Source: Zygnema circumcarinatum SAG 698-1b
Taxonomy: Eukaryota; Plantae; Zygnematophyceae
Reading direction: 5' to 3'
Assembly: GCA_037447605.1 (NCBI GenBank)
Contig: CM074818.1
Coordinates: 2,182,617 to 2,246,616 of the forward strand
DNA: 64,000 nt
The notes beneath the pieces are model-generated. The model ran no database searches and had not been told where the DNA came from. It saw only the letters and a program-made list of their open reading frames with translations. Below are positions 49,506-56,383 of the stretch, in pieces. The position numbers and the translations under genes are program-made. How positions within the stretch are numbered: position 1 is the first letter of the stretch; the number at the start of each line of letters is the position of its first letter.

Positions 49506-52500
49506 CTAAGACTTAGCTGCGCCTCTCACAAGGACTAGCGGCGTTTGCTCATCTGCATTGCCTGAAAACCCCCACACCAAGAAATGTCGTTATTTTTCAG
49601 AAAATAGATCCACAACCATTCAACTCTCATATTCTTTACCCACAGCCCTACGAACCTTGAACCCTAAACCTGCGCCCTAAAGCTTGAAAGATCGACAACT
49701 CTTTAACCCTGAACCCAACAATTTTCAAATCCTCCAACGACATCTGCACTTCCCATCTCCCCCTCCCCCCCTCTCCCTCCCTCTCCCTCTCCCTCCCTCT
49801 CCCTCTCCCTCCCTCTCCCTCTCCCTCCCTCTCCCTCCCTCTCCCTCTCCCTCCCTCTCCCTCCCTCTCCCTCCCTCTCCCTCCCTCTCCCTCTCCCTCC
49901 CTCTCCCTCTCCCTCCCTCTCCCTCTCCCTCCCTCTCCCTCCCTCTCCCTCCCTCTCCCTCCCTCTCCCTCCCTCTCCCTCTCCCTCTCCCTCCCTCTCC
50001 CTCTCCCTCCCCTCTCCCTCTCCCTCTCTCCCCTACCTGCAGGGTTGTCACGTAGAGCGGCTGCGAGAATGTTGCAGTCGACTCCGTTGGAAGCCTGCGT
50101 TCACACGCGGCTCAAAAATATCTCGAATGGGTGTTCACACTGGCACCGCCACCTCTGTTTTTGCCAAATTCGTCCGAGCACTAAAGATATAGATGGAGCA
50201 AAGTTTGAATGCAGAATTTTCTGGTTTGAAAGAAGGGATTGCAAGGACAGCAAGCAACGAATAGATTGGCGCGGTCCCCCTCTCTCTCTCTCTCTCTCTC
50301 TCTCTCTCTCTCTCTCTCTCTCTCTCTCTCTCTCTCTCTCTCTCTCTCTCTCTCTCTCTCTCTCTCTCTCTCTCTCTCTCTCTCTCTCTCTCTCTCTCTC
50401 TCTCTCTCTCTCTCTCTCTCTCTCTCTCTCTCTCTCTCTCTCTTTCTTTCTCTTCCCTCCCCCCCTTCTCTCTCTCAGAGATTCCTTACCGCCAAGATCT
50501 GCACCTTCTTCAAATCGTTGACATCCACTATTGCCACCTCACAGCCTGCCAGCCATCCTTCCCTCCCTCCAAAATTTAAATAAAGCGATTTAAATAAGTA
50601 TCGAGTTACTTCTTTAAATGAGAATTTTAAAAACGTGTGCCTCCCGATTTCACCTCAAAACGTGACAAAAAAAAGAGGTTGTCACGTCACACCTGTCCTG
50701 GCCTGGAGGGCATCGACTGTCTGCTGCGATCTCAGCTGCAAGCCGGGCCCGTATGGTGGGGGAGAGAGAGAGAGAGAGAGAGAGAGAGAGAGAGAGAAGA
50801 GAGAGAGAAGAGAGAGAGAGAGGGGGCGAGAGAGAGAGAGAGAGAGAAAGAGAGAAACGGCAAGATAGAGAGAAAGATGGCGACAGAGAGAGAGAGAGAG
50901 GGAGAGAGAGAAGACAGCAGGAGAGTGGCGTGAGTCAGTCGCCAGGTACATTGAATCCGGACATTCAAGCTCGAGTACATCGAACCTGGACATTCACGTT
51001 CAATTCATAGCATTTGACCAAACGACCAGGTACTTTGAATCTGGGCATTGGAGGTCCGATTCATTGAACGACGAAACAATGAGGTGCATTGAATCTGGAC
51101 AGTTTCTTTGTTTTGTGCACTGACCGGCCCAAGAGTGATGAAGTGGTCATACGGCGGTAGAGTCCCTGTGACGTCATCAATGAGGCGAGCCTGGGCAGCG
51201 ACAAAAGAAATTTAATCAACCAATTTTTTTTTCCAGAGCCCTAAAACCCTAAACCTTACACTCATTAAAACCCTAAGAAAGTAACAAAAAAATAAATGAA
51301 GAGGGGGAATTTCAAACCTGCTCTCCGGCGAGGTAGTAAAAAACTCCTCTCTGTTTGAAAAGGAGTCTGCTTTGCTCTGGCCCTTCTCCAGGCAGCAATG
51401 AGAGAGGGAGAGAGAGAGAGAGAGATAGATGGGGGACGAAGCAGAGAGGGAGAGAAAGAGGAAACAAAGGGAGAGGGAGAGAGTGACAGAGAGGAAGTGG
51501 GAGTAGGCGGGAAGGGAGCGGGATTGTGAGAGGAACATAAGAGAGAGTGGGAGTGGGAGAGAAAGGAGAGAGAGAGAGACGTGGAAAGAAGGAGCGAGAG
51601 TTGAGGGAGAAAGGGGGAGGCAGAGCGAGGACGAGGGAGAGGGAGAAAGAGAGAGGGAAAGAGGGAAAGAGAGAGAAGGGTTTCGAGGAGATCGGGCAGA
51701 TAGAAAAAAAAAATTGGAAGACCGACCTGGCAATGATGGCTCCAATGACGGCAAAAATTATTCGAAATCTGCCCACAACGTCAACTAGGGCCTGCAAAAA
51801 ACAAATTAAAAAAAGGGCGTGAATTGGGAGAGAGGTGGTGAGAGGGAAGACATTTGGCCTTTATATCTCCCTTTCAACCTTGTTTCCGATTCTGAGAATG
51901 GCAGTGTGTGTATAGGAAAGAGAGAGAGAGAGAGACAGGAGAGAGAGAGCGAGAGAGAAAGAGAGAGAGAGAGGGGGGAGAGAGGGTGAGAGAATTGACG
52001 CGGACGAGAAAGAGAGCGAGAGAGAGAGTTAACACGGACGAGAAAGAGAGAGAGAGACAGGAGAGAGAGCGAGAGAGAGAGAGAGAGAGAGAGAGGGAAA
52101 ACGGACGAGAAAGAGAGCGAGAGGGAAAACGGACGAGAAAGAGAGCGAGAGATAGAGTTAACACGGACGAGAAAGAGAGAGAGAAAGAGAGAGAGAGAGA
52201 GGGAGAGAGTGAGAGAGAGAGAGAAGACGGACGAGAAAAAAAGAGAGAGAGTTAACACGGACGAGAGAGACAGAGAGAGAGAGAGGGAGAGAGAGAGAGA
52301 GAACACGGTTGAGAAAGAGAGTGAGGTATATAGAGCGAGTGAGAGAGAGAGACAGAGAGAGAGATAGAGAGAGAGAGAGACACCCACCTGCATCCCGCAC
52401 GCAGTAGCGAGAGAGGAGGTGGGGTGGAAGAATCCGCAGGCCCACTTGGCCACCCTTCCCGCCCTCACTCCTCGAGGGTGTCTGTATCGGCCCTGCATCG

Positions 52501-55500: not shown

Positions 55501-56383
55501 CTTTACAACTTTAATAGCAAACAGAATAAAACTTGGGGTGAAACTCTAACACTTCCTCCAACCCTAACTCTAACCCTAACTCTGACCCTGACCCTAGCCC
55601 TGACCCTAACCCTAACCTTAACCCTAACCCTAACCTTAACCCTAACCCTAACCCTAACCCTAACCCTAACCCTACCCCTAACCCTAACCCTAACCCTAAC
55701 CCTAACCCTAACCCTAACCCTAACCCTAACCCTAACCCTAACCTTAACCCTAACCCTAACCCTAACCCTAACCCTAACCCTAACCCTAACCCTAACCCTA
55801 ACCCTAACCCTAACCCTAACCCTAACCCTAACCCTAACCCTAACCCTAACCCTTTACTCTAACCCTAACCCTAACCCTAACCCTAACCCTAACCCTAACC
55901 CTAACCCTAACTCTAACCCTAACCCTAACGCTAACCCTAACTCTAACCCTAACCCTAACCCTAACTCTTACCCCTAGCCCTAACCCTAACCCTAACCCTA
56001 ACCCTAACCCTAACCCTAACCCTAACCCTAACCCTAACCCTAACCCTAACCCTAACCCTAACCCTAACCCTAATCCTAATCCCTAATCCCTAACATTATG
56101 CTACAGCCTGCACCTGCATGGAGCGAAGGCGCTGCGCCTCCTGCGACAGCCATAGCTCATTGCTCATTCCGTAAGTCCCCTCTGCTGCCCACCCGCCCGC
56201 ATCCGCCGCCATGGCTTCCCCCGCAGTAGCAGAGCAGCGAGCAGGGGGCCGCAATGCTTTGCCACGTGGCTCCTGGAGAGGCTTCGGGAAGGTGGAGCGC
56301 GGAAGGAGGGGGGCGCACGACACGTGGACACCGAATGCAGCGCTCTCGAGACGCCACGTGGCGGCCTGCAGGAGGGAGGCCAT
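49506..56383 (-). CDS. Nuclear, probably plastid-targeted homolog of the cyanobacterial F420-0:gamma-glutamyl ligase-like (CofE-like) family; 15 exons, 460 aa
   Basis: Exons 56383-56114, 55434-55343, 54866-54761, 54619-54524, 54177-54127, 53723-53605, 53184-53104, 52562-52388, 51791-51727, 51366-51318, 51190-51125, 50735-50693, 50545-50490, 50094-50037 and 49561-49506. Total 1383 nt, every junction GT-AG and in phase. Motifs I recognise from the cyanobacterial family: [85 protein letters not shown] and [16 protein letters not shown]. Confidence 0.85.
50279..50445. repeat. (CT)n microsatellite; similar long (CT/GA)n tracts at 3915-4065, 5845-5970, 8690-8790 and 60885-61165
   Basis: Read directly from the sequence; all are intronic or near genes. 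Confidence 0.95.
55561..56093. repeat. Interstitial telomere-like array (CCCTAA)n, about 88 units, inside intron 1 of the F420-ligase-like gene
   Basis: About 530 bp of ccctaa with scattered variants (ccttaa, ctctaa, ccctga, ccctag). The intron spans 55435-56113. Confidence 0.92.

Follow-up and report, generated by a model that had tools for sequence, protein, structure and literature searches.

The window, a 64,000-nt stretch of the nuclear genome of the streptophyte alga Zygnema circumcarinatum, carries on its minus strand a gene of 15 exons that runs from position 56383 to position 49506 (Table 1). Joined in frame, the exons give 1383 nt, that is, 460 codons followed by a TAG stop. Fifteen short exons encoding 460 amino acids were what the original prediction had put together from the letters. 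We rebuilt the gene independently of it, with tblastn of homologs against the whole window as the guide, and arrived at the same start and stop with no internal stop codon. All 14 introns are bounded by GT and AG and measure 127–679 nt; they are very rich in repeats, and the exons between them are short. Intron 7 contains an assembly gap, 52 nt ahead of the acceptor of exon 8. Since the alignments of homologs cross the exon 7/8 junction without a gap, no coding sequence has been lost there and the reading frame is independent of the run of Ns.

Table 1. Exons of the gene, and the intron with the assembly gap, in window coordinates
Feature	Position	Strand	Content and support
Exon 1	56114..56383	-	aa 1-90: ATG, transit-peptide-like presequence (aa 1 to ~65), eukaryote-specific conserved stretch TYG...WL..E..RL.SMQ
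Exon 2	55343..55434	-	92 nt; the beta-sandwich domain and the region in common with cyanobacteria begin here; tblastn with P0013, P0002, P0109; cag|...|gtacgc
Exon 3	54761..54866	-	106 nt; tblastn and splice sites
Exon 4	54524..54619	-	96 nt; conserved motif R.DGYW.AYI
Exon 5	54127..54177	-	51 nt; tblastn with P0001
Exon 6	53605..53723	-	119 nt; conserved motif YGP.GR
Exon 7	53104..53184	-	81 nt; P..THLL..LDDP, start of the CofE-fold domain
Intron 7	52563..53103	-	assembly gap 52615-52624 with poly-G/C flanks; length uncertain, irrelevant to the frame
Exon 8	52388..52562	-	175 nt; GD..A.GETPLA.MQGR and an invariant motif of 12 residues
Exon 9	51727..51791	-	65 nt; hydrophobic helix
Exon 10	51318..51366	-	49 nt; G.FY.LAGEQ
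Exon 11	51125..51190	-	66 nt; a stretch of 19 residues; 78% identity to P0013
Exon 12	50693..50735	-	43 nt; length fits the 14-residue spacer of homologs
Exon 13	50490..50545	-	56 nt; A.VDVNDL, aligned with the IITDT strand of CofE
Exon 14	50037..50094	-	58 nt; tblastn
Exon 15	49506..49561	-	56 nt including TAG; a motif of 12 residues, then the protein end, without a CofE-type C-terminal tail

In blastp against a local set of homologs the joined model matched cyanobacterial proteins over residues 90–455 (E 1e-131) and those of Sphagnum and Mesotaenium at E ~0, values far outside what chance would give. A transcript-derived relative of 344 aa (P0110) aligns with residues 120–460 with one single-residue gap, and so spans 13 of the junctions. 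The eukaryote-specific stretch in exon 1 aligns in tblastn with the N-termini of the Selaginella and Pycnococcus proteins, and exon 8 used alone as a query retrieves the family at E 4.5e-22 to 1e-12. The gene had also been called hidden, which is true only of a prokaryote-style ORF track, because many algae and plants without flowers (for instance Marchantia MPTK1_2g07820, Klebsormidium KFL_001790040, Micromonas pusilla XP_003054892 and Selaginella XP_024522509) have annotated orthologs, as do cyanobacteria such as Hormoscilla and Synechococcus. As these are already in databases, the gene is a new member of a known, uncharacterized family; the Zygnema copy itself is absent from the protein collection searched, where the best identity was 69%, to Mesotaenium.

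The orthogroup is that of the cyanobacterial proteins of ~385–400 aa that NCBI and UniRef name 'F420-0:Gamma-glutamyl ligase'. As had been predicted for a cyanobacterial CofE-like family, the model is collinear with them from end to end, at 49–54% identity over ~365 residues; identity to streptophyte members is 57–69%. It retains 76 of 78 invariant and 30 of 32 near-invariant family columns, among them an invariant motif of 12 residues, and shows no essential difference from the rest of the orthogroup. A quick maximum-likelihood tree of 69 rows places all 31 plant-lineage rows in one clade (SH-aLRT 99) that is nested among the cyanobacterial rows, which fits endosymbiotic gene transfer and so agrees with the origin first proposed. 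Branching within this clade tracks the species tree, and the window gene falls within a set of Zygnematophyceae and embryophytes (95), nearest to Mesotaenium. The gene is thus almost certainly an intact, spliced nuclear gene of a streptophyte alga, orthologous to a protein of the plastid's cyanobacterial ancestor, whose product consists of a presequence, an Ig-like beta-sandwich and a CofE-fold domain. No tested function was found in the literature searched for any member of the orthogroup.

As one more ortholog the gene is itself ordinary; the interest lies in the family, which is nearly universal in cyanobacteria, occurs in every streptophyte alga and non-flowering land plant sampled, and is apparently absent from angiosperms. 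Holders among the matches listed are Mesostigma, Chlorokybus, Klebsormidium, Closterium, Mesotaenium, mosses, liverworts, lycophytes, ferns and Cryptomeria, together with Micromonas pusilla CCMP1545, Chloropicon, Pycnococcus, Pyramimonas and Tetraselmis. All of these named holders belong to lineages that retain murein or plausibly do, and for most of the holder lineages a complete plastid peptidoglycan toolkit is reported (PMC10784329, PMC4815162). In the matches listed, the green-lineage distribution of the orthogroup resembles that of plastid peptidoglycan. The family has been retained in the nucleus for more than 1 billion years in lineages that keep plastid murein. The best 120 matches to the Cryptomeria protein include no angiosperm, and hence neither Asparagus nor Citrus, both said to retain the full murein toolkit (PMC10784329). 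Such a phyletic pattern is to be expected also of other genes lost by angiosperms, possibly FO synthase among them.

The N-terminus of the protein looks like a transit peptide, as had been suggested for about the first 55 residues: these contain 10 Ala, 8 Ser + Thr, 7 Arg + Lys, 7 Pro and only 2 Asp + Glu, they have no counterpart in the cyanobacterial proteins, and the equivalent region of the Sphagnum ortholog (residues 1–66) is disordered in its AF2 model. The plant-lineage presequence stands where the cyanobacterial protein has a membrane anchor, and by its composition the window protein is probably targeted to the plastid. The fold was assessed on AF2 models of two orthologs, cyanobacterial P0011 (pLDDT 80.8) and Sphagnum P0184 (pLDDT 85.1; 64.6% identical to the window model). 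The top PDB match of both was Archaeoglobus fulgidus CofE (Foldseek E 3e-6, probability 1.00). VIA comparison with 2PHN gave Z 14.0 for P0011 and 14.2 for P0184 (rmsd 3.4–3.5 Å over 182–183 residues), the next rows scoring about 9.5, and a profile of the C-terminal domain matches CofE chains at E 2e-5. Judged by these models, the C-terminal half of the window protein adopts the CofE fold, and to this extent the F420-ligase match first proposed stands.

Comparison with CofE itself (2PHN, 2G9I, 7ULD) shows what is shared and what is not. The alpha/beta fold is common to ~182 residues at an identity of only 17–20%, and two elements of CofE can be aligned with the family: the strand-helix 'GD.....S/E....GR' at the N-terminus and the strand 'I.D' in the center. 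The chemistry is probably of the same type, a nucleotide-dependent ligation of a carboxylate and an amine. Scores against PF01996 (gathering score 25 bits) are 17–28 bits for cyanobacterial orthologs, of which P0094 alone exceeds the threshold, and 13 bits for P0108; eukaryotic P0002, P0109, P0107 and P0001 have no match, nor have the window exons taken singly, which are too short for one to be expected. Bacterial relatives of the C-terminal domain do pass (28–51 bits). The NCBIfam models for CofE equivalogs, TIGR01916 and NF009809, match neither six cyanobacterial or algal orthologs at E<=1 nor the Sphagnum and Marchantia proteins at E<=0.01, and give the bacterial relatives 18–39 bits, as against cut-offs of 181 and 274. 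In the HMMER alignment VISKAEGR of CofE is paired with vaitqgR of the family, that is, the lysine of SKAEGR is replaced by I or T and the glutamate by Q, and the G-R alone is kept; the window protein has AAMQGR at this position. The alignments of P0011 and P0184 stop at residue 222–223 of the 249 of CofE, and the orthologs end 4–11 residues later; the window protein ends five residues past its ...LVLVR strand. Judged from these alignment ranges, not from residue-level superposition, the last ~27 CofE residues have no family counterpart. They include Arg234, in the C-terminal tail of the partner chain, which contacts the deazaflavin together with the G153–C155 segment and F92 (PMC10861534). Conversely, the family adds to CofE an N-terminal Ig-like domain and a membrane anchor (cyanobacteria) or presequence (plants). 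We considered the family as a CofE equivalog and rejected this assignment because Pfam scores are marginal, NCBIfam models do not match, SKAEGR is altered and the tail with the deazaflavin-stacking arginine is missing. The automatic name 'F420-0:Gamma-glutamyl ligase' is probably misleading for the orthogroup.

When 1.84 billion representatives were searched with a profile, the C-terminal domain turned up in other bacteria too (Pelotomaculum, Moorella/Neomoorella, Desulfotomaculaceae, Symbiobacterium, Limnochordales and others), where it is stand-alone or fused and shares every motif at 33–46% identity. These relatives lack the N-terminal beta-sandwich and have DGSLATPPAMQ in place of a 12-residue motif of the orthogroup. 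Among 29 longer, mostly multi-domain representatives picked from the 150 matches listed, fusions to TPR are the commonest architecture (10/29), and six of the 29 are fusions to Amidase_3. The domain is also fused to a true MurF (TIGR01143 score 321.6, cut-off 288.6), to a polysaccharide deacetylase, and to a GNAT in a gene that overlaps a downstream MurJ gene. Of 80 genome loci, 12 have an Amidase_3 fused to the domain, 42 have one directly upstream and 15 have a divergent one within ~1 kb, with two more within ~3 kb; it is present in 73/80 overall, a count biased to one Bacillota-dominated clade since the query used to collect the loci consisted largely of proteins fused to an amidase. Neither a signal peptide nor a TM segment was found in the fused or adjacent amidases. 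An Orn/Lys/Arg decarboxylase gene lies on the same strand in 34 of the 80 loci, usually adjoining the domain-amidase pair. Downstream of the cyanobacterial gene come a GNAT gene (a partner common to both groups), RuvX and DUF3727, an order kept from Prochlorococcus-like genomes to Hormoscilla, with YceG/MltG in addition in Hormoscilla and L006. This GNAT neighborhood is not universal: the neighbors in Thermostichales are Pterin_4a, DUF3038 and DUF4335. Fusion or conserved adjacency with murein genes (Amidase_3, MurF, polysaccharide deacetylase, MurJ, YceG/MltG) is a finding on bacterial relatives of the domain, a kind of evidence that does not apply to a nuclear gene of a eukaryote.

We propose, with a probability of about 0.45, that the protein is a plastid CofE-type nucleotide-dependent carboxylate-amine ligase whose substrate is a murein precursor and not F420-0 or FO. 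The carboxylate would be activated as an acyl phosphate, which would then be attacked by the amine. The functional assignment is drawn from relatives that are only 33–46% identical in this one domain. In its most specific version, which is tentative, a diamine (putrescine or cadaverine, or an N-acetyl form of these) would be ligated to a free stem-peptide carboxylate, for example the alpha-carboxylate of D-iso-glutamate, and the partner GNAT in cyanobacteria would N-acetylate the diamine. No paper in the literature searched names a ligase for diamine modification of murein, and we know of no report of diamines in cyanobacterial murein. Comparable modifications are described elsewhere: glaucophyte cyanelle murein is cited as carrying N-acetylputrescine on stem residue 2 (Pfanzagl 1996, as cited in PMC9434261), and murein of Negativicutes has cadaverine or putrescine on the D-Glu alpha-carboxylate (PMC10628300). 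The reaction would resemble the amidation of D-iGlu by MurT/GatD, and likewise the activity by which Selenomonas and Veillonella transfer diamines (its gene is not named in the literature searched), in being an amine modification of a free stem-peptide carboxylate on the cytoplasmic or stromal side. MurT, however, belongs to the Mur-ligase family and does not have the CofE fold, and we claim no family membership for the window protein. Against the proposal, the precursor pool in moss was reported as unmodified DAP-pentapeptide (PMC9434261). According to reviews, some genes considered essential for the plastid murein layer seem to be missing from land plants, and the final structure of the layer is unknown (PMC10784329, PMC9434261). 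The predicted amide ligase is conserved and probably targeted to the plastid, and its bacterial relatives are linked through fusions and operons with MurF, MurJ, murein amidases, decarboxylases that form diamines, and N-acetyltransferases; this makes it a concrete candidate for a step in the modification of murein. If the diamine-ligase reading is true, the murein of streptophyte plastids carries polyamines, and 'F420 ligase' is the wrong public name for the whole orthogroup.

Could a CofE-fold ligase instead make a soluble amine conjugate, or modify another substrate such as a protein or a different polymer of the cell envelope? This is possible: the links to a decarboxylase and GNAT suit a small-molecule polyamine conjugate equally well, genes for NAGPA phosphodiester glycosidases adjoin two of the relatives, and the TPR fusions are silent on murein. 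The MurF fusion, the MurJ operon, the amidases at 73 of the 80 loci and the YceG/MltG synteny nevertheless point to murein as the substrate.

The ligase chemistry is itself a prediction, because the K and E of SKAEGR are replaced. Moreover, many members have Q for the acidic residue of the NP.GN.DEQTP motif near the C-terminus. The protein might therefore be a non-catalytic one, for example a binding or regulatory subunit. Cytoplasmic Amidase_3 regulators are known; CwlM is reportedly a cytoplasmic, catalytically inactive amidase homolog that regulates mycobacterial murein synthesis. We consider such a role unlikely, as ~78 columns are invariant over cyanobacteria and plants, including acidic residues at the IITDT strand of CofE and the IDD motif, which fits a conserved active site.

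The original prediction raised the possibility that a plastid gamma-glutamyl ligase uses a deazaflavin (FO or an F420-like compound) or some different cofactor as its substrate, and this we regard as quite unlikely. The CofE fold and the marginal to positive PF01996 matches agree with it, and FO-using photolyases occur in cyanobacteria and unicellular algae, but the review that describes these finds no evidence of F420 synthesis in eukaryotes (PMC8498797). FO, moreover, has no carboxylate to ligate, and the motif, tail and equivalog-model differences set out above leave the proposed substrate unsupported. In the neighborhoods examined no cof gene lies next to a relative, whereas many of the relatives adjoin peptidoglycan genes, and diamine genes as well.

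Glutamylation of a folate or pterin in the manner of FolC2 is very unlikely. Canonical FolC/FPGS is present in cyanobacteria and plants, so that there is no missing gene to fill, and apart from the Pterin_4a gene just upstream in one Thermostichales genome, no folate genes are found in any neighborhood examined. The precedent is CT611, a CofE homolog of Chlamydia trachomatis that complements a folC mutant of E. coli and whose substrate is not F420 (PMC1971073), indicating that the CofE fold has been recruited to other carboxylate substrates. CT611, though, has a folate substrate and is clustered with folate genes, a clustering that the neighborhoods of the present family do not show.

Finally, short exons amid repeat-rich introns might suggest a pseudogene, or short ORFs that line up by chance, but this is scarcely credible for a gene with 15 of 15 exons in frame, canonical splice sites, no premature stop, collinearity with orthologs to single-residue resolution and nearly all invariant residues retained.

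The original prediction of 15 short exons joining in frame to encode 460 amino acids was borne out by an independent rebuild, which gave the identical model. Homologs found via exon 8 served as tblastn guides and the splice sites were read directly, defining a minus-strand gene in the region 49506-56383. The exons total 1383 nt, enough for 460 codons and the TAG stop, the frame is open throughout, and GT..AG borders are present in 14 of 14 introns. Three extra exon candidates spotted by eye (54050-53989, read in three frames, plus other frames of exons 2, 4, 6, and 12) were discarded because they lack alignment to homologs and their phases are incompatible.

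Exons of the CofE-like gene (window coordinates)
Exon	Position	Strand	Basis
1	56383-56114	-	tblastn guide + splice sites
2	55434-55343	-	tblastn guide + splice sites
3	54866-54761	-	tblastn guide + splice sites
4	54619-54524	-	tblastn guide + splice sites
5	54177-54127	-	tblastn guide + splice sites
6	53723-53605	-	tblastn guide + splice sites
7	53184-53104	-	tblastn guide + splice sites
8	52562-52388	-	tblastn guide + splice sites
9	51791-51727	-	tblastn guide + splice sites
10	51366-51318	-	tblastn guide + splice sites
11	51190-51125	-	tblastn guide + splice sites
12	50735-50693	-	tblastn guide + splice sites
13	50545-50490	-	tblastn guide + splice sites
14	50094-50037	-	tblastn guide + splice sites
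15	49561-49506	-	tblastn guide + splice sites

Comparison with homologs indicates that the gene is real. Exon 8 alone retrieved 109 proteins (E 4.5e-22 to 4e-12, 60-74% identity). Residues ~90-455 of the joined model are 49-54% identical to cyanobacterial proteins of 385-402 residues (E about 1e-131), and blastp identity to bryophyte, fern, lycophyte, conifer, and streptophyte-algal proteins is 57-65%; the value for Mesotaenium is 69% over the columns kept in the tree. Of 78 columns invariant across 27 family members the model retains 76 (the exceptions being V to I and G to A), and of 32 nearly invariant ones it retains 30. A 344-residue homolog, P0110, covers model residues 120-460 with a single one-residue gap and so spans 13 of the 14 junctions; it comes from public sequencing runs, in ~2-kb contigs that appear to lack introns and that we took for transcript assemblies. 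Tests on the joined protein itself consisted of the frame check and of local blastp, mafft, and tree comparisons with proteins already retrieved, whereas the family and fold tests described below used orthologs (cyanobacterial P0011 and Sphagnum P0184) as stand-ins.

Does the assembly gap at 52615-52624 affect the model? It lies inside intron 7 (53103-52563), 52 nt upstream of the exon 8 acceptor, and ortholog alignments cross the exon 7/8 junction gap-free. The gap therefore holds no coding sequence, and the reading frame is independent of its length. This gap and a second one at 49102-49111 both fall within long G runs surrounded by GGGAGG-type repeats, and look like homopolymer breaks rather than lost unique sequence. 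Most of the intron sequence is (GA)n/(CT)n, GGGAGA-type, or CCCTAA repeat, and there is a long repeat at 50280-50443. Purine/pyrimidine microsatellites, among them (CT)n of ~165 nt, CCCTCT-type arrays of ~260 nt, and GA-rich tracts, dominate the intron stretches 49760-50030, 50270-50445, 51400-51700, 51900-52360, and 54880-55120. Intron 1 (55435-56113) is ~80% CCCTAA/TTAGGG-type telomere-like repeat, resembling that of humans, with a few variant units. Downstream of the gene, on the plus strand, is a perfect 12/12 sigma-70 consensus (TTGACA, 18 nt, TATAAT; 48020-48049), most likely a chance match in a eukaryotic nuclear genome.

The gene is an added member of an orthogroup that is already known and functionally uncharacterised; for several holders the UniRef name is already 'F420-0:Gamma-glutamyl ligase'. 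Members occur in streptophyte algae (Mesostigma, Chlorokybus, Klebsormidium, several Closterium, Mesotaenium), mosses (Sphagnum, Ceratodon), liverworts (Marchantia, Riccia, Calypogeia), lycophytes (Selaginella, Diphasiastrum), ferns (Adiantum, Ceratopteris, Psilotum), a conifer (Cryptomeria), and the chlorophytes Micromonas pusilla CCMP1545, Chloropicon, Pycnococcus, Pseudoscourfieldia, Pyramimonas, and Tetraselmis. ESM Atlas look-ups added further cyanobacterial clusters only. Some database models look imperfect: the Selaginella RefSeq proteins (P0002/P0112) end after the exon 9 equivalent, at 308 residues, and the Riccia sorocarpa protein P0191 has a UBP zinc-finger Pfam match, probably from a neighboring gene merged into the model. 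The best 120 matches to the Cryptomeria protein (all E<=1e-104) are conifer-like transcripts, bryophytes, ferns, algae, and cyanobacteria, with no angiosperm among them, Asparagus and Citrus included, and so, judged from these 120, the family appears to have been lost in flowering plants.

A quick-search maximum-likelihood tree of 69 rows was rooted with bacterial relatives of the C-terminal domain. All 31 plant-lineage rows form one clade (SH-aLRT 99) nested among the cyanobacterial rows, where rows lacking an organism name carry an assumed 'cyano' label. Branching within the plant clade tracks the species tree, the Zygnema protein grouping with Mesotaenium, Closterium, and embryophytes. The topology is consistent with one endosymbiotic transfer and vertical inheritance thereafter, in agreement with the predicted cyanobacterial origin.

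Assignment to the CofE family depends on the level considered. AlphaFold models of P0011 (pLDDT 80.8) and of P0184 (pLDDT 85.1, pTM 0.83), the latter 64.6% identical to the Zygnema model, both have an Ig-like beta-sandwich ahead of an alpha/beta domain. Matches of the sandwich to adaptin-ear, ApaG, and transglutaminase-barrel folds were only generic (Z 8-10). For the C-terminal domain, Archaeoglobus fulgidus CofE (2PHN, 2G9I, 7ULD) stood far above other matches, both in Foldseek (E 3e-6, probability 1.00) and in VIA (Z 14.0 and 14.2, rmsd 3.4-3.5 A over 182-183 residues with 17-20% identity). By sequence, a more diverse profile of this domain (A4) reached the CofE chains at E 2e-5; profile A1, from full-length homologs, retrieved nothing from PDB sequences at E<=10. 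Single pieces were too short to be informative: exon 8 gave only chance matches to PDB sequences, and ten candidate exon translations scanned singly against Pfam gave nothing at E<=10. When orthologs were scanned with PF01996, the CofE domain model, the cyanobacterial proteins and one other homolog, P0108, scored 13-28 bits (gathering score 25), whereas four eukaryotic orthologs had no match. The NCBIfam CofE equivalog models did not match the orthologs scanned. Thus the CofE fold is present but the CofE family's own tests fail, and the original CofE-like assignment is right at the fold and superfamily level, as judged by Foldseek, VIA, and the C-domain profile.

It was also proposed that the substrate might be a deazaflavin. 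FO is used in photolyases of cyanobacteria and unicellular algae, and a review of F420 found no evidence that eukaryotes synthesize it (PMC8498797). In liganded CofE, G153-C155, F92, and the partner chain's Arg234 hold the deazaflavin ring (PMC10861534). The structural alignments end at CofE residue 222-223 of 249 and P0011 and P0184 stop a few residues further on, so that the C-terminal tail carrying Arg234 has no counterpart in the CofE-like family; moreover the SKAEGR motif of CofE is replaced by ..I/T.QGR, with loss of the K and E. Given these differences and the unmatched equivalog models, a deazaflavin substrate is favored by the name alone.

Bacterial relatives point in another direction. 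Searching 1.84 billion representative proteins with a profile produced 1150 matches. Outside the full-length family the C-terminal domain stands alone (~210-240 residues) or forms part of fusion proteins; in these relatives all motifs are present, identity is 33-46%, and scores exceed the Pfam threshold. We surveyed 29 longer, mostly multi-domain representatives picked from the 150 matches listed. TPR repeats were found in ten, an N-terminal Amidase_3 (N-acetylmuramoyl-L-alanine amidase) domain in six, and a polysaccharide deacetylase in one. Two further fusions among the 29 come from metagenome contigs of unassigned taxon. In P0445 (L009 664-2874) the CofE-like domain is C-terminal to a genuine MurF (TIGR01143 321.6, cut-off 288.6). 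In P0442 (L092 665-3468) a GNAT acetyltransferase is C-terminal to the CofE-like domain, and the gene overlaps that of a downstream MurJ (lipid II flippase) by 4 nt.

Genome neighborhoods were compared at 80 loci, mostly from spore-forming or diderm Bacillota, including Pelotomaculum, Moorella/Neomoorella, Desulfotomaculaceae, Thermoanaerobacter, Symbiobacterium, Limnochordales, and Fermentithermobacillaceae. Amidase_3 is in the same ORF as the CofE-like domain at 12 loci, in a separate ORF directly upstream at 42, and divergent within ~1 kb at 15 and within ~3 kb at two more, a count biased toward this clade by retrieval with an alignment (A5) of mainly amidase-fused proteins. An Orn/Lys/Arg decarboxylase of the short AAT-fold type, which was not a selection criterion, is encoded on the same strand at 34 of the 80 loci, mostly just 3' of the domain gene or just 5' of the amidase gene; such enzymes produce agmatine, putrescine, or cadaverine (PMC8503589). 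The order of the three genes in these Bacillota clusters (L020-L086) varies (e.g., L022 5024-8118; L039 5040-6627), and the literature searched held no description of such a cluster. Neither the fused proteins nor the adjacent amidases have a signal peptide or transmembrane segment, which makes a cytoplasmic location of the module probable.

In cyanobacteria the gene order is CofE-like, a GNAT of 330-440 residues, RuvX, DUF3727, YceG/MltG, HAD phosphatase, and ProB (L001 8001-12840, L004 6001-9247, L006 6001-12077). It is kept in Hormoscilla, another filamentous genome, and Prochlorococcus-like genomes, with homologous GNATs throughout; YceG/MltG is present in Hormoscilla (L001) and L006 and missing from the Prochlorococcus-like L004 and L005. 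The arrangement is not universal, as a Thermostichales genome (L094) has different neighbors. Genes for NAGPA-type phosphodiester glycosidases adjoin two relatives (L095 5192-7194, where the overlap with the CofE-like gene start is 4 nt, and L039 8519-10744), which hints at a wider cell-envelope glycan context.

In CofE-type enzymes a nucleotide activates a carboxylate, which is then joined to an amine. In a murein context, the decarboxylase would provide a diamine, the GNAT would N-acetylate an amine, MurF would build the precursor and MurJ would flip it across the membrane, and Amidase_3 would cut or bind the MurNAc-peptide bond. There are precedents for amine-bearing murein: glaucophyte cyanelle murein has N-acetylputrescine on stem residue 2 (Pfanzagl 1996, as cited in PMC9434261), and in Negativicutes murein the alpha-carboxylate of D-glutamate bears cadaverine or putrescine (PMC10628300). 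The full plastid murein toolkit is reported from streptophyte algae, bryophytes, seedless vascular plants, Cupressaceae, Chloropicon, and Micromonas pusilla, though not M. commoda, and is mostly lost in core chlorophytes and most angiosperms (PMC10784329, PMC4815162). The spread of the CofE-like family in the green lineage resembles that of the complete toolkit. From the partner genes, the amine-bearing precedents, and this distribution, we propose that the family are putative murein-precursor amide ligases, a function transferred from bacterial relatives at 33-46% identity in one domain. We consider this the likeliest function, at somewhat below even odds (about 0.45); diamine ligation, its most specific form, is a more tentative suggestion.

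The murein-ligase reading has weak points. The distribution could also fit other genes lost from angiosperms; Asparagus and Citrus, absent from the best 120 matches, are said to retain the toolkit; and the precursor pool of moss is reported to be unmodified (PMC9434261). In the literature searched we found neither a functional study of the family or of a CofE-murein link, nor a paper naming a ligase gene for murein amine modification. As far as these searches reach, the murein-ligase hypothesis is new. It is this family-level hypothesis that gives the Zygnema gene its interest, and it can be tested in moss, liverwort, and cyanobacterial models.

The N-termini bear on where the proteins reside. 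At the N-terminus of cyanobacterial members a hydrophobic helix precedes basic residues (LE.QYRRRP); by the positive-inside rule this arrangement implies a membrane anchor, with most of the chain predicted to be cytoplasmic. In the plant proteins the anchor gives way to a poorly conserved N-terminus, disordered in the Sphagnum model (residues 1-66, pLDDT below 50), and after this presequence comes a short, eukaryote-conserved helical stretch (TYG...WL..E..RL). Residues 1-55 of the Zygnema protein are rich in A, S/T, R/K, and P and have only two acidic residues; a plastid transit peptide is the natural reading, so that the plastid targeting first suggested for this protein is probable. Inside the CofE-like domain there is a strongly hydrophobic helix pair (residues 331-357, exons 9-10, 51791-51318; Kyte-Doolittle >2 over 19 residues). 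Its conservation extends across plants and cyanobacteria, it is modeled with confidence, and it may serve as a dimer interface or in membrane contact.
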